64,000 nucleotides of DNA from assembly GCF_006345805.1 (NCBI RefSeq), contig NC_043004.1:74152001-74216000 (forward strand), in the 5' to 3' direction. The DNA comes from Octopus sinensis. Its lineage: Eukaryota. Shown piece after piece: positions 3,497 to 62,646 of the stretch. Below the pieces are notes generated by a model that did not search any database, was not told the origin of the DNA, and was given only the letters and a program-made list of their open reading frames with translations. Both the position numbers and the translations under genes were made by a program. How positions within the stretch are numbered: position 1 is the stretch's first letter; the number at the start of each line of letters is the position of its first letter.

Positions 3497-4660
3497 TTAC
3501 GAGCAAAATGCCCCCCGTCCAATGGACGGAGGTGAGTTCTCAAACATTTAAACCAAATTTTCTCAAAACAACTTGTCCGACCGTCCCATAGGCCTCCCCA
3601 TTTCAGAAACACTGCTTTAACCTAAATTGTTACTATCAATTTTACAATTTCAAATGTTCCATACAATTGCGTTTCCAAGGACACAGAATTCAAACTTACC
3701 TCTTGATGACAACATTAGAATTTGGTGACTCAGCTGAGGAGAATAACATGTGATTCTGATGCTCGTAAAATATTGTTTAATATTCGTATATCAAGTTTAT
3801 ATTAAGTTTAAATATTGCATGTATATATAACTATATTAACTTTTATAATTGAGCCAATAATTAGTGTGTTGGTATACGTTTTGGAATTATTTTTTATTGA
3901 CAACTATTTGAACAAGAGAAAGAGGAAGTAGAATACTTTTGATGCTATTTTTCTCATCTTTTACTTACATCAGGAAAAACGAAGACAGATATTTTAGCTT
4001 TATTGCAGCGTTTTGGCTGGTTCCCAGGTCAAAGCTGATTATTAAAATTGTTAAAATCAGTTTTATTTTCCCTTGACCTGATTGTTAATTAGAAGCAGAC
4101 ACTTGAGAATTTCTGGTAGTAATATGTATTGAAACAACAGGCATGAATGGGTGACGGACTGGTTTGCAAATATCATTAGCAATTAGATAATTGAAATTTG
4201 TTTGTTTTTGTTATTTGTTTGTTTTGTTTTGTTTTGCATGATCTACTTTTGGTTATGGAAATTTTAAATGAATGCATTTAAGATAATTTGCGAAAATGAT
4301 TTGTTTTCACGTTGCATAACATCTGATTGCAAACTGAATGTCCTTGGATGGTTTCTCAAAAAAAACAAGCCGCTAGAAAATACACTTTCTATTTGAAATG
4401 CAAAATATCTTGAATTTGTAAAGGTCTGAGATCGAATGAGAGCTGGCCAATTTTAGATTTTAACAGGTGTTGTTTTGTAATTCAAATTCATGGGAGAAAT
4501 ATTTAATTTTAATTCAGTAATGCATGCATTTGTGAACAAAATCGTCGTTGAAACAAATACCCAGATAAAGCACCAACGAAGCAATTATTGACTCAATTAT
4601 AACAGTTGACATAATAATATAGACTAACTTGCAAAAGAATTTCATTTTCCTACAAATATT

Positions 4661-4857
4661 GGCTTCAAATTTTGGCAAAGGGCTAGAAATTCGAGGAAAG
4701 AAAGTAAGTCGATTGCATCGACCCCGGTGCTCAAGTAGTATTAATGTTATTGATCCTGAAATGTTGAAAGGCCTAGTTGCCCACGGTGGAATTTGAACTC
4801 AGACCATTATGCATTGTGCCCGGCGTACTAAACGAATCTTCCAGCTCGCTACCATAA
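4661..4857 (-). mobile_element. tRNA-derived SINE with 15-bp target-site duplication
   Basis: Minus strand starts GAGCTGGAAGATTCGTTTAG and has box-B-like GAGTTCAAATTCC. Flanked by TTTCCTACAAATATT at 4646-4660 and 4858-4872. Confidence 0.75.
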
Positions 4858-11600: not shown

Positions 11601-11715
11601 TACAATTTTCTAACTATTAATATTTGAATGTAATTTTTCGCCTACAACTAAACATCCAACATGCGCGTGTGTGTGTGTTTGTTTGTTGTGTCTGGGGGGT
11701 TGTTTATACATGTGA

Positions 11716-11995
11716 CACCGTGACAGACCAGGCTATCAGATGTTACTACACATCGCTGGTCGCAATGCGCTTCGCATTGTTTTAGCCTACAAATGACGCC
11801 AACCCGCTTTCTAAGCGAGCAGGCCAACAGAAGAAAGAGTGAGAGAAAGTTGTGGCGAAAGTGTACAACAGGGATCGCCACCACCCCCTGCCGGAGCGTC
11901 GTGGAGCTTTAGGCGTTTTCGCTCAATAAACACTCACAAAGCCCGGTCTGGGAATAGAAACCGCGATCCTACCACCGCGAGTCCGCTACCTTCAC
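11716..11995 (-). mobile_element. tRNA(Arg)-like-head SINE, body type A
   Basis: Head GCGGACTCGCGG..GGATCGCGGTTTC; body shared with 28496-28686 and 33138-33447. Confidence 0.85.
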
Positions 11996-12059
11996 CATGT
12001 TTATTCATGTACACACAAAATATTAAATATTTATGATACCTTTATAATTTTCAGTATTC

Positions 12060-12900: not shown

Positions 12901-13496
12901 ATTTCTTGTAAACGTGCCATCAATCGCTAATTTTGTTCTTCCGTTGTCAGCGTAATTATTCGTCATTTATTTTACACTAGCGTATTTGAGTTACTCTGTA
13001 CTCCAATTATATCTCGTATTTTGTACTATTGAGTTCTTGGATCATTTCGGCAGGCTACTGCTTGTTTCAGTAACCGTTGTTTCAGTAACAATTTTTCACA
13101 ATTCTTCTTCTTTAGAGAGTTGCAGTGATAGATGCAATATAGCTTGAGACAGGGTGCTTGGCACCAATGTGCCCTCAGTCCTTCACAGACTTCTGTCAGA
13201 AGGGCAATGTAATCTATACATTCTATAGAGGGTAAGAATTGGCATGAGCGGTGATGTTCTCGGTAAGACTGAGGAGGAACAACTAATTTGTCTATCCAAG
13301 AGGACTTCCAGCCTTGGACAATTTTCAAAAAGTAGTAAAATACGACTGCGCAATCTCCTAGAGTAGTGAATAATTAACAGCAGTGTAATTACTTTTCCAT
13401 TCATTATGTTTCCCATTTTCAAATCTTGCCCTAAATATTTCATCACTCAGCAATTCAATGAGATTTTTCTGCAAACTGTACATCAGTAACATTAGT

Positions 13497-13893
13497 GGAG
13501 GCGCAATGGCCCAATGGTTAGGGCAGCGAACTCGCGGTCGGAGGATCGCGGTTTCGATTCTCAGACCGGGCGTTGTGCATGTTTATTGAGCGAAAACACC
13601 TAAAGGTCCACGAGTCTCCGGCAGGGGGTGGTGGCGACCCCTGTTGTACTCTTTCGCTCCAACTTTCTCTCACTCTTTCTTCCTGTTTCTTGTCCTCGAC
13701 TTCCTACGCAACCTCTGAGCCTGGATGCGCATTCATCCATACGTCGATGTTCTCGGTGTCGGGGTTGACCTGCTTTCTCTTCTGCGGGTCTTACGAATAG
13801 AAAAGGACCATGTATCGGACTTCTCCCACTCCAGAGGCGCGATTTTGCGAGCTCTCGGACGAAGGCCGCTTCGCTCAACAAACAAACAAACAA
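13497..13893 (+). mobile_element. tRNA(Arg)-like-head SINE, body type B, (AAAC)n tail
   Basis: GGAGGCGCAATGGCCCAATGGTTAGGGC (box A) and GGTTTCGATTC (box B); diverges from type A after ACTCTTTCTTC. Confidence 0.85.
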
Positions 13894-27110: not shown

Positions 27111-28280
27111 ATTATGGCGGTCCCCTCGTTATCGAGTATGGCCATTGCACGAAGCTTATCTGTTACTGGTGCTGTGATCGAATGTGACTTTTTAGTCCAG
27201 CTAAAGATCTACAACGTCTTGTACAGAATTGGCAACTAAAACCTTTACTGGTAATAGCCGGCTGCAGTTGTAACTGGGCTTCATGTACCTTTGCATGTCG
27301 TTTAAGTCCTCCTGCCGAATTACACTCTCTTCCACATGCCCGACAGATATGATTAGTATGGTGTGTTACACCACACCAGTGGCCAGGTTGTCACTCATCT
27401 GTCTCGCTTTATGACTACGAAGATTACTCTTTAGTCCAGCTTTACTGACGCAGGATCTTGCACAGACACTGCATGTCAGCGTCATAGGAAGACCCTTCCC
27501 ATCAGGAAGTGTAACAGCGATGCCCTTCCTGACATCCTTCCTTACTTTCTCCTGTGCAACTCGAGATTTCTCAAAAGTGGCTGTCCGCTCGTGCACAATC
27601 CTTCTCCACCTGCTACGATCAATAGCTATGCCTTCCCATGTGTCAGGAGAGATGCAAGCATCTCTTAAGGAAGCCTTCAGCAAGTCCTTATACCTCTTTT
27701 TTGGTTTATGTGGAGGTCGTTCTCCTTTAGCTAACTCGCCATAAAAGAGTTGTTTTGGCATCCTTGAATTCTTCTTCCTGACCAGATGACCACTCCATCT
27801 GAGCCTTTGCTTTAACACAAGGGCTTCTATACTTTCACACCGAGAGCCTTCCAATATTTCAAGATAACTGAGGCGGTCCTTCCACTTAATGCCATAGATC
27901 CGTCTGAGGCACATCTGATGGAAACGTTGCAGTTGTTTAAGGTGGTATAGATATGTGACCCACGTCGCGCAGGCATAGAGAAGAGAAGGGAGCACAGATG
28001 CCTTGTACACATTTATCTTTTTTTTCTGCATATGTCTCGCCGACTCCAGAGGACATAGAAATAATCGGACTGAATACCTGATCGCGCGGTTAAACCATTG
28101 GGAGTGAAGGACTCCTAGCATTTGTTAGGGCATCCTTCTAGGAGAAGGTAACTCAGGTAACTGGGATAACTCCGACATAAAAGCTGCGGCTCAGTGGTTA
28201 CCGATGATGTTGACTTGTTCTTCTTTTCGGATTATGGCTGCTGTTGCTTAGTGAGTGGAATTGACTCAGTGCACAGCCTT
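27111..28280 (-). mobile_element. RTE-clade LINE 3' part with three C-terminal C2H2-type fingers
   Basis: ORF 27366-28121 (RLRWSGHL, RMPKQLFYGEL); fingers CSVC..SNLRSH, CRAC..RHAKVH, CQFC..SHIRSQH (last two in a shifted frame, stop at 27163). Confidence 0.9.
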
Positions 28281-28495
28281 TTCTCACTTAAAAAAATTCT
28301 TCTTGCACAGGCTTTGCACGATAACAACATTGATTGATTGATTAAATTGATTAACTAATTCATGATTGTTGATGGCGCTGTGAGTCTCAACTGCATGACT
28401 GGCTGTAGCCTTAAAAAGCAAAAAATCAATGATGTACCAAAACAGTATATATATATACATACACATATATATTCAGACATACATATTGTTATTGT

Positions 28496-28686
28496 TGTTT
28501 TAGCTTTCAAATGATTCCACCCCGCTGGCTAAGCGAGCAGGCCAACAGAAGAAAGATTGAGAGAAAGATGTGGCGAAAGAGTACAGCAGGGATCACCCCC
28601 CCTCCCTGCCGGAGGTCAATAAACACTCACAACGCCCGGTCTGGGAATTAAAACCGCTACCCTAACAACTGAGTCATTGCGCCTCC
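28496..28686 (-). mobile_element. tRNA(Arg)-like-head SINE type A, internally deleted
   Basis: Matches 33138-33447 with two deletions. Confidence 0.8.
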
Positions 28687-28743
28687 ACACACACACACAC
28701 ACACACATATATATAAAGGAAAACAAACAAAAGAAAAACAAAC

Positions 28744-29295
28744 ATGACTAACTTGCAGGCCTGCAACAGACGAAATTGGTCTGATAACGAAATTGATGTT
28801 TTAATAAACACATGGTTCTCTCTTTCCCAAACAGAAAATCTAAATGTCTTGTGTTTGAATGAGATTGCCGAAAAAACATCACAAGTGGTCAACACACGAT
28901 CCGTCAAACAGATTCGTAGCAAGCTGAAACATATCGAAGTATCTTTCAAACTGATAAAAGGCCATTATGAAAAGCTTCTTCATATTTTCACAGTTCAAGA
29001 ACAACAACAGCTAGAAAATCAGCAGCCACAACAACAACAACAACAACAGAATGAGCCACTCCTGGTTCCCAGCACAATGGCTGACCCTAACATCGGTCAA
29101 GCACAACAACAACAACAGCCACAGCAACAAGAACAACAACAGCCACTCCTCAACTCTAGCTTACTAGATGATTCACTAAATGCCAGTATCTTTTCACCGC
29201 TCTCACAGCAACCACCACAATTATCATCATCATCATCACCACCGCTGCCACCATCGTCTTCTATCATCAAAAAATACCAACAGAAAACCAAATAA
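28744..29295 (+). CDS. Putative ORF1 N-terminal part: Myb/SANT-like (trihelix-type) domain + polyQ/Ser-Pro linker
   Basis: RRNWSDNEIDVLINTW..NEIAEK..RSVKQIRSKLKHI matches the Myb/SANT-like pattern; (CAA/CAG) runs follow. Confidence 0.7.
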   Translation: MTNLQACNRRNWSDNEIDVLINTWFSLSQTENLNVLCLNEIAEKTSQVVNTRSVKQIRSKLKHIEVSFKLIKGHYEKLLHIFTVQEQQQLENQQPQQQQQQQNEPLLVPSTMADPNIGQAQQQQQPQQQEQQQPLLNSSLLDDSLNASIFSPLSQQPPQLSSSSSPPLPPSSSIIKKYQQKTK

Positions 29296-29367
29296 GAAAC
29301 CACTGCCCTCTTCCCCCACATCACCACCTCAATACTACTGCAGTAACAAAAACTTAAAGAAACATAG

Positions 29368-29919
29368 GAAGCAGAATGCGCCCCCACGGCACAAACAAGA
29401 AATCCCCAAATATGCCGCTATTCACTGCGCCAGAGACTCTGCACAAATAGTGACTGCATCTTCACGCATCTACCCGGCACTAGACGCACTACCGGCCAAG
29501 GCCAAAGCACGCATCCCACAATAACATCAACACCACCAAATAGTAAATCGAAATTCAAAACACACACAACTCGGAGTCCCAAAATCTGCCGGTATTCCCA
29601 ACGTGAGAGAACATGTCTACTGAGTGACTGTCCCTTCACCCATCTTCCAGGGACCCGACGCACAAACAGAAACGGGGCTTCAAGCCAACACACAAACCTG
29701 AATAACAATAAAAATAGAAACACACCATGCTGCAGTAATGCTGGTCCAGTCTTTTCAGGAAGACACAAAAACAACAACAACAAAAGTGGAAACTACAACC
29801 CTATCCAACAGTGCAACCACGCCTCCAGCCAAAAACTGCTCCCTAAGCAGGAAAATTCTTTTTTAGCCATGTTGAACATGGCAAAAGAGATACACAAAAA
29901 CATTCTAGCCATCACTTAA
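29368..29919 (+). CDS. Putative ORF1 C-terminal part with two CCCH zinc fingers (no start codon; not in the ORF track)
   Basis: Same frame as 28744. ICRYSLRQRLCTNSDCIFTHLPGTRRT and ICRYSQRERTCLLSDCPFTHLPGTRRT (C-x8-C-x4-C-x3-H); stop TAA 29917-29919. Confidence 0.8.
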   Translation, partial: EAECAPTAQTRNPQICRYSLRQRLCTNSDCIFTHLPGTRRTTGQGQSTHPTITSTPPNSKSKFKTHTTRSPKICRYSQRERTCLLSDCPFTHLPGTRRTNRNGASSQHTNLNNNKNRNTPCCSNAGPVFSGRHKNNNNKSGNYNPIQQCNHASSQKLLPKQENSFLAMLNMAKEIHKNILAIT

Positions 29920-29942
29920 CACCATCCTATGCTATTACCCCA

Positions 29943-32900
29943 GTGCACCAATTCCCCACATTGCTGCCACTAACACACACAAAAAATCCAAGCCCCTTGC
30001 AACAGTCAAAACCAGCCACTACACTAACCTCCACATTCCTACTCAATGCACAAGGTGTCAGCCCTTCCATCAATGCACAAAAATGGAAGGTCCAATTCAT
30101 TGAAGACTGGGTTGGTAACCATTCACACCACATCCCTTTCTTCATTCTCACTGAGACCCACCTTGACAACTCCCACTTGGAAGCCGAAGTGAGAGTGAAG
30201 AATTTCACAACCATCCGCGCGGATCGTATCGGCAGAAGGAAGGGCGGAACTGCCATTTTCCTGCATGATTTATTTACGGCAGATGGAAATAGTATATTCT
30301 CCAATGGCTACTGTGAATCAGTCACCGTGCACAACAAAGCCAATGACCTGACAGTAATTGGGCTCTATAGGCCGCCCCAAACACCCATACTGTGCTTTAA
30401 AGAATGCCTCAACAGCATTAAGTGCTTTATTCAACAGTGCCATTCTAGCAACATACTCATGATGGGAGACTTCAATCTACCCTGTGTTGACTGGACTACA
30501 AACTGTTTGAAACCAAGCACTCCCGCCTCAACCGCTGACAAAGAAGCAGCAGAGTCACTTTTCGACTTTACGAATGAGTTTTTCTTGTCCCAACTTGTCC
30601 TTGCACCAAGACATCAGAACATTTTGGACCTAGTGTTTAGTAACCACACTAACACTATATATAACGTTACAGTGGAAAAAACCCTTCTTTCAGACCATGA
30701 CATGGTTCTCTGTAACATGAAATTCCACCAGCCGAAAGCTAATCCTAGTGACCTTCCTCCAGCCCACCCATTTGACAACATGGATCTCCATAAAGCCAAC
30801 TGGGATGCAATCAGGAACGAGCTATCAAATGTTGACTGGTCCTTTACACATACACACATCTCCACCAACCATAAAACATCTTGGCAGATCTTTGTAGACA
30901 CCGTCACAGACATATGTGCAAAACACTCCCCACCAAGACCTGTGAACAAAAAGTGCAGAATCCCCCAAAACAGAAAAACCATTATCAGAAAAATAAAAAG
31001 AACAAACAAAAAAATTAACAAACTAAAGTACTGCCAACAGCAACACACACATTCGACGGCTATCGCACTGCTTGAATCCAAAAAATATAACCTCCAACAA
31101 TGCATGAAGACCCTCATCAATAACCAAAGATCAGCTGAGGATAAGTGGGCCATTGAAAAAATCAAACTCAACCCCAAAGTGTTCTTTTCATTTGCGAGGA
31201 AACGCAGGGTCACTGTCTCCACTGTAGGCCCTCTAATTGACGAAACTGGCACTCTCCAAGATAATGCCAAATCCATGGCCGAGATACTGCAGAAACAATA
31301 CTGCTCTGTTTTCAGCAATCCTGATATGGCCGATCTGGGCTGTATCAGTGATGTCAACCCCCAACACACTATATCGGACATAACGTTTAGTGCCCCTGAT
31401 GTCTTAGCGGCGATAAACGAAATAAAACACAATTCAGCAGTAGGCCCCGATAGGTTCCCTGCTTGTGTCCTGAAGGTGTGTCGACACCAACTTGCATCTC
31501 CCCTTGCTAATCTGTGGAGAAACTCACTGGATGCTGGCTATATTCCAAAAAACCTTCTGTCCCAGTCTGTTGTCCCAGTTTTCAAAAAGGGAAACAAGTC
31601 CCTTGCAGTGAACTACCGTCCGATCTCACTCACCTCTCATATCATCAAGGTATTTGAGAGGGTGGTGAGATCTCGAATAACCCAATTTCTGGAAAGCAAC
31701 AGACGGCTGATCTCCAACCAACATGGGTTCCGTAATGGAAGGGACTACCTAACGCAGCTCCTGCATCACTTTGAGGACATTTTGAGAGCTTTGGGAGAGG
31801 GCTCCAACACCGATGTCATCTACCTTGATTTCAGTAAGGCCTTCGACAGGGTCGATCACAAGATCCTATTGAAAAAACTATCCAACATTGGTGTCTCTGG
31901 AAAGATACTGAAATGGATCAAGTGTTTCCTGACAGACAGATCTCAACATGTTGTAGTTGAAGGGGTAAAATCAAGCCCAGCCAAAGTCAGTAGTGGCGTT
32001 CCGCAAGGCACTGTGCTGGGCCCACTTCTTTTCATCATTTACATTAATGACATTAATGACATCATCAAGCACAGCAACATAAAAATCTTTGCAGATGACT
32101 CCAAGCTACAGAAGGTCATAAATGAGGCGAGTGACCGGACATGCCTTCAGTCAGATCTACTGGCTGTTATCCAATGGGCAGAAAAAAAATATGCTGCTGA
32201 ACGAGGATAAATTTGAGCTAATCCACTTTGGAAAAGAGGATGCCCTGAAACTCCCATACTCCCTTCCTTCAGGTGAAACTCTCGCGGCGTCCAACAACAT
32301 CAGAGACTTGGGAGTAATTGTGGACAACAACATAAGCTGGGCCACTCATATAAACACCAAAGTTGACATGGCCCGCAGAATGTGTTCCTGGATTCTCAGA
32401 ACTTTCCAGTCGAGAGATATCCACACAATTATCCTTCTCTTCTCCACTTTTGCCCGACCCCACCTTGAATACTGTTGTCCACTGTGGTCTCCCCACACAA
32501 TACAAGGTATCATAAAAGTTGAAGCACCTCAAAGGGCAATCACAAAAAAGATAGGTGGCATGACAGGCCTCGACTATTGGGGTCGACTAGAAAAGCTAAA
32601 ACTCTATTCTCTCCAACGTCGTCGTGAGCGCTACATCATCTGCATGATGTGGAAAATATTCCATCAGCATTGCCCAAATGATGTTGGCATCACCTTTAAG
32701 GTACATCCAAGGCTTGGGCCCCGTGCCATCCGCCCAAAACAAAAATCGCACTCTCATCTCATAACAACAATACGGCACAATTATTTCACCTCAATTGGCC
32801 CCGCTCTCTTTAACATTACACCAAAACACATTAAAACAGAAACTGACCCTATAGGGTTCAAGAAGTCTTTGGACAGATTCCTTCAAGAAATCCCGGATAA

Positions 32901-32973
32901 ACCCCCTACACCCGGATATGTCTCTGTAAACAATAACTCTCTACTTGAGTGGGCCATAGTGCCCAAATTCTGA
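29943..32973 (+). CDS. ORF2: AP endonuclease + reverse transcriptase, one frameshift in the A8 run at 32182-32189
   Basis: FLLNAQG, LTETHL, MGDFNLP, SDHDMV, NYRPISLTS, YLDFSKAFDRVDH, SGVPQGTVLGP, FADD, HLEYCCPLWSP. Confidence 0.92.
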
Positions 32974-33062
32974 CTTGAAAGACTTCACCAGGTGGTGCTA
33001 TTAAGTTAGACATGGCCTGGGCCAATAATGGCCGAAACCTATCAAAGTATCAAAGTATCAAA

Positions 33063-33127
<65 letters not shown>

Positions 33128-33137
33128 ATATATATAT

Positions 33138-33447
33138 ATCACCGTGATCACCGTGACCGACCAGGCTATCAGATGTTGCTACACATCACTGGTCACAATG
33201 CGCTTCGCATTATTTTAGCCTTCAAATGACGTTACCCCGCTGGCTAAGCGAGCAGGCCAACAAAAGACAGAGTGAGAGAAAGTTGTGGCGAAAAAGTACA
33301 GCAGGGATTGCCACCACCCTCTGCGGAGCCTCGTGGAGCTTTAGGTGTTTTCGCTTAATAAACACTCACAACGCCCGGTCTGGGAATCGAAACCGCGATC
33401 TTACGACCGTGAGTCCGCTGCCCTAACCACTGGGCCATTACGCCTCC
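33138..33447 (-). mobile_element. tRNA(Arg)-like-head SINE type A, full length
   Basis: Complete head with box A/B and CGGTCACGGTGATCACGGTGAT tail. Confidence 0.88.
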
Positions 33448-33485
33448 ACACGCACACACACACACACACAACACATACATATGTA

Positions 33486-39296: not shown

Positions 39297-39622
39297 TGGC
39301 ACTCCGTTGGTTAAATCGACGAGGGTTCCAGTTGATCCGATCAACGGAACCGCATGCACGTGAAATTAACGTGTAAGTGGCTGACCACTCCTCAGCCACG
39401 TGTTACCTTAACGTAGTTCCCGGGGAGATTCAGCGTGACACAGTGTGTGACAAGGATGGCCCCTTCAAGTACAGAAACAGGAAGAAAGAGTTAGAGAAGC
39501 TGAGCCTTATGGAACATTAGGTGTCTTCGCTCAATAAACACTTGCAACGCCTGGTCGGGGAATCGAACCCGCGATCCGACGACCGCGAGTCCGCTGCCCT
39601 ATTCACTGGGCGATTGCGCCTC
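39293..39622 (-). mobile_element. tRNA(Arg)-like-head SINE, body type C
   Basis: Same head; after ACTCTTTCTTCCTGTTTCT continues into a third body ending AACCAACGGAGTGCCACATC. Confidence 0.8.
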
Positions 39623-60307: not shown

Positions 60308-60425
60308 TCGTGGAGCTTTTAGGTGTTTTCGCTCAATAAACACACACAACGCTCGGTCTGGGAATCGAAACCGCGATCCTGCGACCGCGACTCCGCTGCC
60401 CTAACCACTAGGCCATTGCGCCTCC
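60308..60425 (-). mobile_element. tRNA(Arg)-like SINE head only
   Basis: GGAGGCGCAATGGCCTAGTGGTTAGGGCAGCGG..GGTTTCGATTCCC. Confidence 0.85.
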
Positions 60426-60450
60426 ATATATGTATATATATATATATATA

Positions 60451-60975
60451 TATACCAATTAAGGACTGAACGCGAAAAGTGGACAGTCAACATGCTAGAT
60501 ATAGACGTCAAATCGCCATTCTCCACAAAAAGTTTATGTTCTCAGATCAAACTCAACACAAAACCAAAGCAATAAACAAGTGAAAATATACGAAATAAAT
60601 ATTTACCCATGTACTAATTTAGTTTCGGCTGTTATTTTCCGCAAGGAAAAGTGCAGCCATCATCAGCATGGTCCCATATAAAATGCAATTTGCTGGACTA
60701 GATGCCAACACGATACCGAAATATCGCGTGCATGGAGTACGGCCTATTACATTTGAAATGTATATTTCAAATGTCTTTACTTTTGGCGCGATGAGACACG
60801 AGAAACTAGCCTGCAGCTAATAGTTAGCAGCAGTTAATTTATCGGTTAGAGAACAAATATTTATATAAAATTAAATTTAGGGTAGAAATTGATATTTATC
60901 AATTAGAACCAGTGGTCTAGCATATTAAAGAAAGAATCCGAAGATTAAAATATTTATATATACCAATTAAGGACT
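60451..60975 (-). mobile_element. Non-coding hammerhead-bearing unit (508-bp period) bounded by 17-bp direct repeats
   Basis: TATACCAATTAAGGACT at 60451-60467 and 60959-60975; (TA)n on both sides; no ORF in the track. Confidence 0.6.
60607..60671 (-). ncRNA. Complete type I hammerhead ribozyme with an extra U after A9
   Basis: CCATG-CTGATGA-T-GGCTG-cac-TTTTCC-ttgc-GGAAAA-taa-CAGCC-GAAA-CTA-aat-TAG-TA-CATGG; all three stems pair. Confidence 0.88.
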
Positions 60976-60978
60976 ATA

Positions 60979-61015
<37 letters not shown>

Positions 61016-62492
61016 AACTTAGATAAACTTAGATATGTTTCGACCAAAGATTGGTCCAGGCCATGTCTAACTTAATAGCACCACCTGCTAGGATTATTCG
61101 AATCCTGTTTAAGTCAAGTTTTGTTTAAGTCAAGTTTTGTTTAAGTCAAGTTTTGTTTAAGTCAAGTTTTGTTCAAGTAGTGAGTTCTTGTTGGGTGAGT
61201 TGTATCCAATTATGGGTGGCTTATCTGGTATTCTTTGAAGGAATCTATCCAGACTCTGTTTAAAGTTGATGGGATCCTTTTCCTCTTTGATCTCTCTCGG
61301 GACAATGTTAAATAGGGCAGGGCCTGTTGAGGAAAAGAAATTATGTTGTAGTGTACATGTATGTTGTGATCTTGAATTGGGCAGGGGACGTATAGCCCGT
61401 GGTCCAAGTCTTGGATGGACCTTGAAGCTAATGTTTAGGTCGTTTGGGCAAAGTTGGCGGTATATTTTCCACATCGTACAAATGATGTACCGCTCACGGC
61501 GACGCTGTAGGGAGTAACGTTTCAAGGCTTTAAGGCGATCCCAATAATCGAGAGCAGCCATGCCTTCAATTCGTTTAGTGAGTGCCCTCTGGGGTGACTC
61601 AATTCTGGAGATGTTTTGTCTTGTGTGAGGAGACCACAGTGGGCAGCAGTATTCAAGGTGTAGCCGTACAAAGGAGGAAAAATGTGGTATGATGACACCT
61701 TGTTCTCTGGACCGGAAAGTTCTTAAGATCCAGGAACACATCCTACGAGCTATATCGACCTTCTTGTTGATGTGTGCACTCCAACTGAGATCGTCATCAA
61801 CAATTACACCCAGGTCTCTGATATTGTTAGAGGCTGTGAGCGGTTCCCCTGAAGGAAGAGAGTATGGCTGTTTTAGTGAGGAGTTTCTTCCAAAATGCAT
61901 CAGCTCAAATTTTCCCTCGTTCAGTTGCATTTTGTTTCTGTCTGCCCATTGACTCACAGCATATAGATCAGACTGGAGTTGAGTTCGGTCTGCTTCTTCA
62001 TTGACGATTTGCTGGAGCTTGGTGTCATCAGCGAATATTTTCACTTTGCAGTAATGTACGACACTGGAAAGGTCGTTTATGTAGATTATGAAGAGTAGCG
62101 AACCCAAGACAGTCCTCTGGGGGACACCGCTGGTGACTTTTGCTGGGCTTGAGTGGACTCCATCAACTACAACATGTTGTGTTCTATTCGCCAGGAAATA
62201 CTTGATCCAGTGTAGAACTTTTCCACGGATTCCAACATTTGCCAATTTTGAGAGTAGGATATGATGGTCTACCCTGTCGAACGCTTTACTGAAGTCAAGA
62301 TATATGACATCAGAGTTCGAACCTGTTCCCAAGGCTTTGAGTACATCTTCAATGTGGTGTAAGAGCTGTGTTAGACAGTCCCTGCCACAGCGAAAGCCAT
62401 GCTGATTTGCATTTAGGAGTTTCTGGGTCTCCAGGAAGTCAGCCATCCTTGATCTTAACACTCTTTCAAACACTTTGATGATGTGGGAGGTG
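61016..62492 (-). mobile_element. 5'-truncated CR1/L2-group LINE related to 28735-33065
   Basis: 438-aa open RT frame 61157-62473; 3' end shares 32 identical nt with 32989-33020; (ATCTAAGTTT)2 tail. Confidence 0.92.
61107..61170. repeat. 16-bp tandem repeat (GTTTAAGTCAAGTTTT) x4 at the ORF2 stop
   Basis: Direct reading. Confidence 0.95.
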
Positions 62493-62556
<64 letters not shown>

Positions 62557-62646
62557 GCTCGTTTCAAGCGGTTGCAATTAATTTAACAATGCAATCATTA
62601 CATGTGTATGTGTGTGTGTATTTATTTATTTTATATATGTATATAT

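Follow-up and report, generated by a model that had tools for sequence, protein, structure and literature searches.

A stretch of 64,000 nucleotides on the forward strand of the Octopus sinensis genome (contig NC_043004.1, positions 74,152,001 to 74,216,000; hereafter the window) carries a LINE in which the open reading frame (ORF) for the APE and RT domains is directly preceded by a Myb/SANT-like ORF and by a further segment containing two CCCH zinc fingers. This raises the question of whether a transcription-factor-type domain forms part of ORF1 of a retrotransposon or only lies beside it and, if it is part of ORF1, whether the Myb and CCCH parts make up one protein. The original prediction, made from the letters of the window, held that the domain had been recruited into ORF1, perhaps with a role in targeting or autoregulation, that no ORF1 of this type was among those described, and that two compensating indels would give one protein of about 390 aa.

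Structure of the LINE copy in the window

The features of the copy are collected in Table 1. Translation showed the arrangement that had been predicted, namely the Myb ORF, three stops in the same frame, and a pair of C-x8-C-x4-C-x3-H modules with LPGTRRT after each, all upstream of the APE-RT ORF. The +1 frame, likewise claimed to be open across the gap between the Myb and CCCH parts, had no stops from 29180 to 29524 in the ORF list. The first 85 residues of the Myb ORF were NWSDNEIDVLINTWFSLSQTENLNVLCLNEIAEKTSQVVNTRSVKQIRSKLKHIEVSFKLIKGHYEKLL. The sense strand was A-rich and G-poor continuously from the Myb part through ORF2. The sequence upstream of the ATG was approximately 29 nt long, compared with approximately 100 nt in a copy from Argonauta hians (L007) and approximately 350 nt in the copy on contig L004; the window copy may be slightly truncated at its 5' end.

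Table 1 Features of the LINE copies in the window (positions count from the first nucleotide of the window)
Feature	Position	Strand	Remarks
Whole LINE copy, defective	28715-33063	+	~4.35 kb; CR1/L2-like 3' end
5' leader	28715-28743	+	Short, A-rich; directly adjoins an upstream SINE-like repeat at its (CA)n(TA)n tail
Myb/SANT-like ORF	28744-29295	+	183 aa; starts NWSDNEIDVLINTWF; from ORF list and three-frame translation
ORF1 N-terminus with Myb_DNA-bind_4-like domain	28744-29007	+	Core residues 9-74 = 28768-28965
Low-complexity linker	29008-29292	+	PolyQ from (CAA/CAG)n, then Ser/Pro-rich part; from translation
ORF1 break	29293-29367	+	In-frame stops at 29293, 29344, 29365; +1 frame open here
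ORF1 C-terminal half	29368-29919	+	CCCH-1, CCCH-2, N-rich spacer, C-terminal helix; stop 29917-29919
CCCH-1	29413-29469	+	CRYSLRQRLCTNSDCIFTH, then LPGTRRT to 29490; from translation
CCCH-2	29587-29643	+	CRYSQRERTCLLSDCPFTH, then LPGTRRT to 29664; from translation
ORF1 C-terminal helix	29851-29916	+	ENSFLAMLNMAKEIHKNILAIT; same frame as the CCCH fingers
ORF2	29862-32973	+	No ATG; frame open from position 29862, overlapping the last part of ORF1
APE domain of ORF2	~30096-30707	+	Exo_endo_phos_2, E 5.3e-14 (Pfam)
RT domain of ORF2	~31590-32180	+	RVT_1, E 6e-26 (Pfam)
3' UTR	32974-33063	+	Includes ~50-nt block with two predicted hairpins, conserved between genera
Tandem-repeat tail (TATCAAAG)3	33040-33063	+	(TA)n tract adjoins at 33064-33140
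Second copy, related family	60950-62492	-	5'-truncated in ORF2; 69% identity over 3' 1.5 kb

ORF2 was listed as two frames, 29943-32210 and 32122-32973, with a single frameshift at approximately 32122-32210, and these encode 755 aa and 283 aa, respectively. The nearest named relative of ORF2 was a protein of A. hians (52% identity), and identities of 42-46% were observed with many LINE ORF2s on metagenome contigs of 4-6 kb. The predicted fold of the block of approximately 50 nt in the 3' UTR comprised 15 base pairs, one of which showed a compensatory change. The tails (TATCAAAG)3, (TATCTAAGTT)2, and (TATCTAAGTG)2 each follow this block, which is kept between genera, and no poly(A) was present. 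The second copy in the window, which is without ORF1, shared this 3' UTR block, had a tail of (TATCTAAGTT)2, and was flanked by (TA)n at either end. (TA)n also borders the entire 28715-33063 unit on both sides, which would be expected if the unit were a single insertion. Judging from its domain content, 3' end, and 5' truncations, the element is an APE-type non-LTR retrotransposon (LINE) that probably belongs to the CR1/L2 group; its ORF2 relatives in the database carried no clade names.

Identity of the N-terminal domain

The predicted Myb/SANT-like identity was checked using Pfam and profile comparison. Residues 9-74 of the window ORF matched Myb_DNA-bind_4 (PF13837) with an E-value of 7.2e-6 and 26.8 bits, which is 0.2 bits short of the gathering cut-off of 27 bits. 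The homologue P0121 was above this cut-off (31.7 bits, E 2e-7), and the homologue P0123 scored 15.5 bits. Alignment of five LINE domains with 15 canonical Myb_DNA-bind_4 repeats by hhalign gave a probability of 96.6% and an E-value of 6e-10 over 63 columns. Across the copies, the key positions of the domain (NWS..E motif, helix 1 W, R52, Q56, K60, I64, H74, and L78) were kept. At the level of profile homology, the N-terminal domain of ORF1 therefore qualifies as Myb/SANT-like.

Structural comparison was carried out with an AF2 model built from only four sequences, which contained helices at residues 14-27, 35-48, and 54-73, where three helices would be expected, as well as a fourth helix (pLDDT 77.8). 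A Foldseek search of the PDB using this model yielded nothing significant, the best matches, weak three-helix ones with E-values above 1 (lowest 1.7), being a homeodomain and the Myb-like domain of ZZZ3. When PDB sequences were searched with the Myb profile, the matches were coiled-coil noise only (E at least 0.1).

Related proteins were searched for exhaustively with phmmer, using the Myb part alone as the query against 1.84 billion representative proteins. Nine matches were obtained, consisting of three short proteins (31-43% identity), which are encoded on contigs L004, L005, and L006, and six long proteins with tandem Myb_DNA-bind_4 repeats. In a word-indexed protein search, the Myb part joined with the CCCH half gave zero matches and a four-sequence Myb profile gave nothing beyond three Logan proteins already found, in a protein database from which called genes for this ORF1 are nearly absent. 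Host Myb_DNA-bind_4 repeat proteins (trihelix/MSANTD/ZSCAN20-like) are related in sequence to the LINE domain (phmmer E 2e-7 to 8e-4), whereas they have 3-7 tandem repeats and are without CCCH, APE, or RT. In addition, the LINE Myb domain is without the 'QC' cysteine and the Gly that are conserved in the canonical host repeats.

CCCH fingers and C-terminal helix

Both modules in the window matched the pattern C-x8-C-x4-C-x3-H exactly, and the ligand spacing agreed with the predicted CCCH fingers. The thresholds of the curated Pfam models, on the other hand, were not reached by the window modules or their homologues (zf-CCCH_2: E 7.6e-4, 20.4 bits against a cut-off of 25.8; zf-C3H1: 15.8 bits against 20.9). 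Short zinc fingers often miss the cut-offs of curated models, so that these scores concern the formal assignment and leave the pattern unaffected. On alignment, the residues C, C, C, and H and the following G were invariant across five elements, distant ones included, and the FL with which the helix begins was invariant among the window, L004, Argonauta, L002, and L003. In the octopod elements, each CCCH finger is followed by L-P/K-G-T-R-R.

Copies on other contigs and in Argonauta hians

The order Myb, linker, CCCH, and helix was identified in three copies other than that of the window: L004, L006, and the Argonauta copy L007. L004, a contig of 4.6 kb, contained a Myb ORF, polyQ, an S/T-rich stretch, and a single CCCH finger with its LPGTRRT, after which came TPCCGDAG, IQQCN, and the helix NSFLDMLNLVKEIQRSILSI. 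These parts were collinear with those of the window, and the Myb ORF was 43% identical to that of the window. The ORF2 on this contig had an identity of only 25% with that of the window, which points to a nested insertion or a chimeric assembly. L006, a contig of 1.4 kb, carried a decayed copy that starts at (TA)n and in which Myb, a stretch rich in Ser, the two CCCH fingers, and the helix are all present. The linkers in L004 and L006 are Q- and S/T-rich. On a third contig, L005, Myb and polyQ were present, after which the element is interrupted.

In L007, one frame extends from the ATG at 3661 to the stop at 4810 (383 codons), with a single premature TAA at 4402 that is TAC (Tyr) in the sister copies L001 and L009. 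This frame encodes, in order, a Myb-like domain (KKKWSTAEISIIVNKWHEL...RRSEKQLKAKLQSIISAYKII), an Asn-rich linker, CCCH-1, CCCH-2, and the helix. The linker in Argonauta is polyN, as the CAA repeat that gives polyQ in the window is read in another phase. The ORF2 of L007 is intact and encodes 1022 aa. Four Argonauta copies were 99% identical and had a common 3' end, and the others start at positions 3932, 4299, and 5107 of L007; such nested starts with a common 3' end constitute a classic LINE 5' truncation series. L001 begins just after the Myb domain and contains the two CCCH fingers and the helix without Myb. The 99% identity of the copies and the intact ORF2 of L007 show that the family was recently active. 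The Myb region is reached by only one Argonauta copy (L007), and its Myb-like segment showed only 26-31% identity to the window domain and no Pfam match when analysed alone. The L007 frame showed that the Myb and CCCH parts are encoded as one predicted protein in the Argonauta family.

Because the whole order recurs in other copies, the arrangement in the window is well beyond chance.

Distant relatives with a different N-terminal part

L002, L003, and L008, the nearest relatives identified outside the octopods, have ORF2s with 42-46% identity to that of the window and an intact ORF1 of 362-446 aa. Read from the N-terminus, their ORF1 has an unrelated domain, a PHD-like finger, three to four CCCH fingers, and finally a helix beginning with EDFLKHL. 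The PHD finger was found only in these three elements, and it gave a weak Pfam match with a clear Cys/His pattern. The last CCCH finger of the distant relatives (CQNGLKMGCCLNDKCTFVHIKG) fits the octopod pattern C-x8-C-x4-C-x3-H-x2-G, and the helix aligns too. Since the CCCH fingers and the helix are common to the distant relatives, they probably represent an old core of ORF1. The presence of a PHD-type N-terminal part on the same core suggests that the octopod lineage swapped in a Myb/SANT domain for the N-terminal domain and PHD finger. These relatives thus lend support to the predicted recruitment of Myb into ORF1, and the swap fits the modular, reticulate evolution of ORF1 put forward by Metcalfe and Casane (PMC4120745).

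Reading of the interrupted ORF1

The CCCH part is not joined to Myb by an open frame in either the window or L004. The three stops in the window fall inside 25 of the 391 codons, a clustering with a probability of approximately 0.011 in simulation, and the ORF2 frames contained zero stops. As to the origin of the break, alignment with L004 placed the window +1 frame in phase with the L004 CCCH frame near NKNLKKH, which favours two indels. In the alignment with L006, the window's own frame was in phase and the stops differed by one base each from AAA, TTA, and TCA, a result in favour of three nonsense substitutions. Both alignments were made at approximately 60% DNA identity in a low-complexity stretch, and neither is trustworthy. 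The alignments thus disagree, and either two compensating indels, in which case the stops would be out-of-frame codons, or three nonsense substitutions are possible. An equivalent break is absent from L007.

Would the stop in the window lineage instead be genuine? The element would then have three ORFs: a separate Myb protein ('ORF0'), a CCCH ORF1, and ORF2. The occurrence of three stops within 75 nt, with none in approximately 4 kb of coding sequence, is consistent with such an element, as is the finding that the Myb ORFs of the window and L004, at 43% identity, stop at nearly the same aligned place, approximately three codons apart. However, neither in the window nor in L004 does the CCCH segment contain an in-frame ATG, and the relation between the Myb and CCCH frames differs between the two copies, being the same frame in the window and shifted by one in L004. 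In addition, the Argonauta frame runs straight through, and AAA and CAA codons, each a single change away from TAA, abound in the break region. A three-ORF element is therefore improbable. Programmed frameshifting or readthrough from Myb into CCCH was also considered and was rejected as the main reading, since the differing frame relation argues against a conserved recoding signal.

We concluded, with a probability of roughly 85%, that the window copy is a defective member of an element type with a single ORF1 of approximately 380-390 aa. One protein of approximately 390 aa, as originally predicted, was thus found for Argonauta in the form of the 383-codon frame; the compensating indels that had been proposed for the window were favoured by the L004 alignment, and nonsense substitutions by that with L006.

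Even as part of a single ORF1, the Myb segment might be a captured 5' sequence that the element carries as a functionless passenger. The linker is unconstrained, with Q in one lineage and N in another, and the relatives work with a different N-terminal module, both of which would be consistent with a passenger. Against this, the Myb domain stays open, and its key positions are kept at approximately 60% DNA identity and across two genera, whereas a passenger would have decayed; this explanation is very improbable. The probability is close to negligible for chance adjacency, that is, a Myb sequence from a host or Harbinger/PIF-type gene beside a LINE 5'-truncated near 29300: although Myb_DNA-bind_4 domains occur commonly in proteins of hosts and DNA transposons, the nearest non-LINE matches were multi-repeat proteins of this kind, and the 5' leader in the window is very short, the same order occurs in L004, L006, and L007 at Myb identities of 26-43%, which marks these copies as old and independent of one another, neither a transposase nor another exon is found nearby, and the strand composition is continuous within a unit bounded by (TA)n on both sides. 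We also looked for full-length copies from which Myb is absent. Myb was kept in L004, L006, and L007, and the copies without Myb were ordinary 5' truncations. As far as sequence comparison can tell, it was confirmed that the Myb segment belongs to the LINE and is not there by chance adjacency.

Comparison with known systems

Four ORF1 types (I-IV) have been described in the CR1/L2/Jockey group, with RRM and CCHC, Tnp22/L1-like, PHD, and esterase domains (PMC4120745). The pieces of the window ORF1 gave no Pfam match to RRM, the CCHC knuckle, transposase_22, PHD, or esterase at E-values up to 1. Myb, SANT, and CCCH are unmentioned in the survey of Jockey-superfamily ORF1s (PMC4120745) and in a 2026 survey of the vertebrate CR1 group (PMC13343379), and the claim that Myb/SANT is not among the described ORF1 types was borne out in these surveys. 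A full-text literature search for Myb/SANT with ORF1 and non-LTR, which covered published papers, returned nothing relevant. The Myb+CCCH ORF1 is thus undescribed in these two surveys, and a family consensus may well have been deposited in Repbase/Dfam without a description of the architecture.

The PHD-type CR1/L2 LINEs (Type III of Khazina and Weichenrieder) resemble the octopod elements in having an ORF2 with APE and RT, a 3' hairpin with a short tandem-repeat tail, and a modular ORF1 with an exchangeable N-terminal domain (PMC4120745). They differ in that the octopod elements carry Myb/SANT in place of the N-terminal domain and PHD finger, on a core of CCCH fingers and helix.

In R2, an N-terminal ZnF+Myb region binds target DNA upstream of the nick in target-primed reverse transcription (PMC12503042). 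R2 and the octopod LINE are alike in that a LINE-encoded Myb domain is combined with zinc fingers, and the Myb domains are likened here by type, not by homology. In R2, which has one ORF only, the endonuclease is restriction-like, the fingers are of the C2H2 type, and Myb lies on the RT protein itself, whereas the octopod LINE has Myb and CCCH on ORF1p and an APE endonuclease. TRAS, a telomere-specific, APE-type element of the R1 clade, has a Myb-like domain in ORF2 between EN and RT that is thought to aid target recognition. Unlike this domain, which lies inside ORF2, that of the octopod LINE lies in ORF1.

Possible role of the Myb domain and implications

In general, the ORF1 proteins of LINEs bind RNA and act as chaperones, and CCCH fingers are usually RNA-binding. 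Given the general roles of these domain families, the CCCH fingers and the C-terminal helix would be the ancestral part of ORF1p, which would bind the LINE RNA and build the RNP, and the Myb/SANT module would add a contact of the RNP with dsDNA or chromatin. By analogy with the ZnF+Myb of R2, this contact would most likely be used where the element integrates, in the course of target-primed reverse transcription; binding of Myb to the element's own 5' end would be a less likely use. That Myb makes ORF1p a sequence-reading, DNA-binding subunit, which steers integration, for example to (TA)n, or binds the element's own 5' end, is a tentative proposal, and we consider it rather unlikely.

(TA)n tracts make up only 1.5% of the window, and both LINE copies in the window are bounded by them on both sides. 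However, (TA)n flanks were not seen at the Argonauta copies, and targeting to (TA)n by Myb was kept as a lead only. The pattern is also explicable without Myb, if the tail anneals to the target or if (TA)n is generally fragile.

A recently active element that joins a transcription-factor-type domain, predicted to be DNA-binding, to CCCH fingers in ORF1 widens the catalogue of ORF1 proteins, and it would provide a clean example of a module swap from PHD to Myb on a conserved core. If the targeting reading is true, the targeting device would sit on ORF1 rather than on the RT protein, and Myb+CCCH would form a new class of ORF1. To our knowledge, recognition of DNA or chromatin in target-primed reverse transcription is known so far only for domains of the RT protein, as in R2. 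The octopod elements could serve as a test system for the contribution of the ORF1 protein to this recognition. In the repeat-rich genomes of cephalopods, such ORFs could also be misannotated as Myb-type host genes.

Organization of ORF1 and ORF2

The start of ORF2 was compared between the window LINE and L007, the longest LINE copy of Argonauta hians. No ATG was found near the ORF2 start in either genus, and the last 19–30 codons of ORF1 were overlapped by ORF2 in another frame. From these sequence features, shared by both genera, it was suggested that ORF2 is translated unconventionally, by reinitiation or frameshifting.

The ORF1 linker is encoded by a (CAA)n-type repeat, which is translated as polyQ in the window and in L004 and L006 (contigs with close Myb matches), and as polyN in Argonauta. 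The repeat itself was retained and its reading phase varied.

The best Myb match was located on contig L004. Its ORF1 is of the Myb-CCCH type, and downstream of this ORF1 lies an intact APE-RT ORF of 1093 aa, which shared only 25% identity with ORF2 of the window. The homology between the window and L004 ended at about L004:1470. Either a different LINE is nested in L004 right behind ORF1, or the contig was assembled as a chimera, or two LINE clades have genuinely exchanged their ORF1.

Conserved block in the 3' UTR

A 3' UTR block of approximately 50 nt was nearly identical between the genus of the window and Argonauta, despite an ORF2 protein identity of approximately 52%. Two hairpins were predicted in this block, and one G-C pair was replaced by A-U in window copy 2, the 5'-truncated LINE of a related family.

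Positions of the features described in this section
Feature	Sequence	Position	Strand	Remark
ORF1 linker repeat	Window	29008-29140
	L007	3990-4200
ORF2 start region, overlapping ORF1	Window	29862-29943
	L007	4722-4812
APE-RT ORF	L004	1282-4563
3' UTR block	Window	32988-33039
	Window	61035-61085	minus
	L007	7805-7855
	L001	8805-8855
(TA)n, window LINE	Window	28690-28717; 33064-33140
(TA)n, window copy 2	Window	about 60980-61010; 62493-62560
MITE-like sequence	L001	4490-4945
SINE-like copies	Window	28495-28707; 33144-33450; 11712-11997; 13495-13681; 39499-39622; 60308-60426
251-aa ORF	Window	27366-28121	minus	RLRWSGHLVRK...GERPPHKPKKRYKD...
N-terminal domain	L002	497-800
	L008	333-650

Flanking sequences

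Both LINE copies within the window (2/2) were flanked on either side by (TA)n, and (TA)n of at least 6 units made up only 1.5% of the window. The start in L006 lay immediately 3' of (TA)n, and L005, another contig with a close Myb match, showed a TG/TA-rich 5' flank. Such flanks were absent from the 99%-identical Argonauta copies. The flanking could reflect target preference, tail-target annealing, or microsatellite fragility. In the Argonauta copy L001, the 5' truncation point adjoined a palindromic MITE-like sequence of approximately 450 nt, with (TA)n immediately upstream of it.

A SINE-like repeat, 200–290 nt long and ending in (CA)n(TA)n, occurred in at least six copies in the 64 kb (72–92% identity), one at each side of the window LINE; its 3' end did not resemble the LINE 3' UTR. 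A 251-aa ORF on the minus strand had no Pfam match, and its sequence presumably resembles the C-terminal part of ORF2 of another LINE family.

N-terminal module of the PHD-type relatives

The distant PHD-type relatives, L002 and L008 among them, shared a conserved N-terminal domain of approximately 100 aa with the motif DELLIGKLKSL..DT..K.LFD.Y..DK..., for which Pfam gave no match. This domain is a further uncharacterised ORF1 module.
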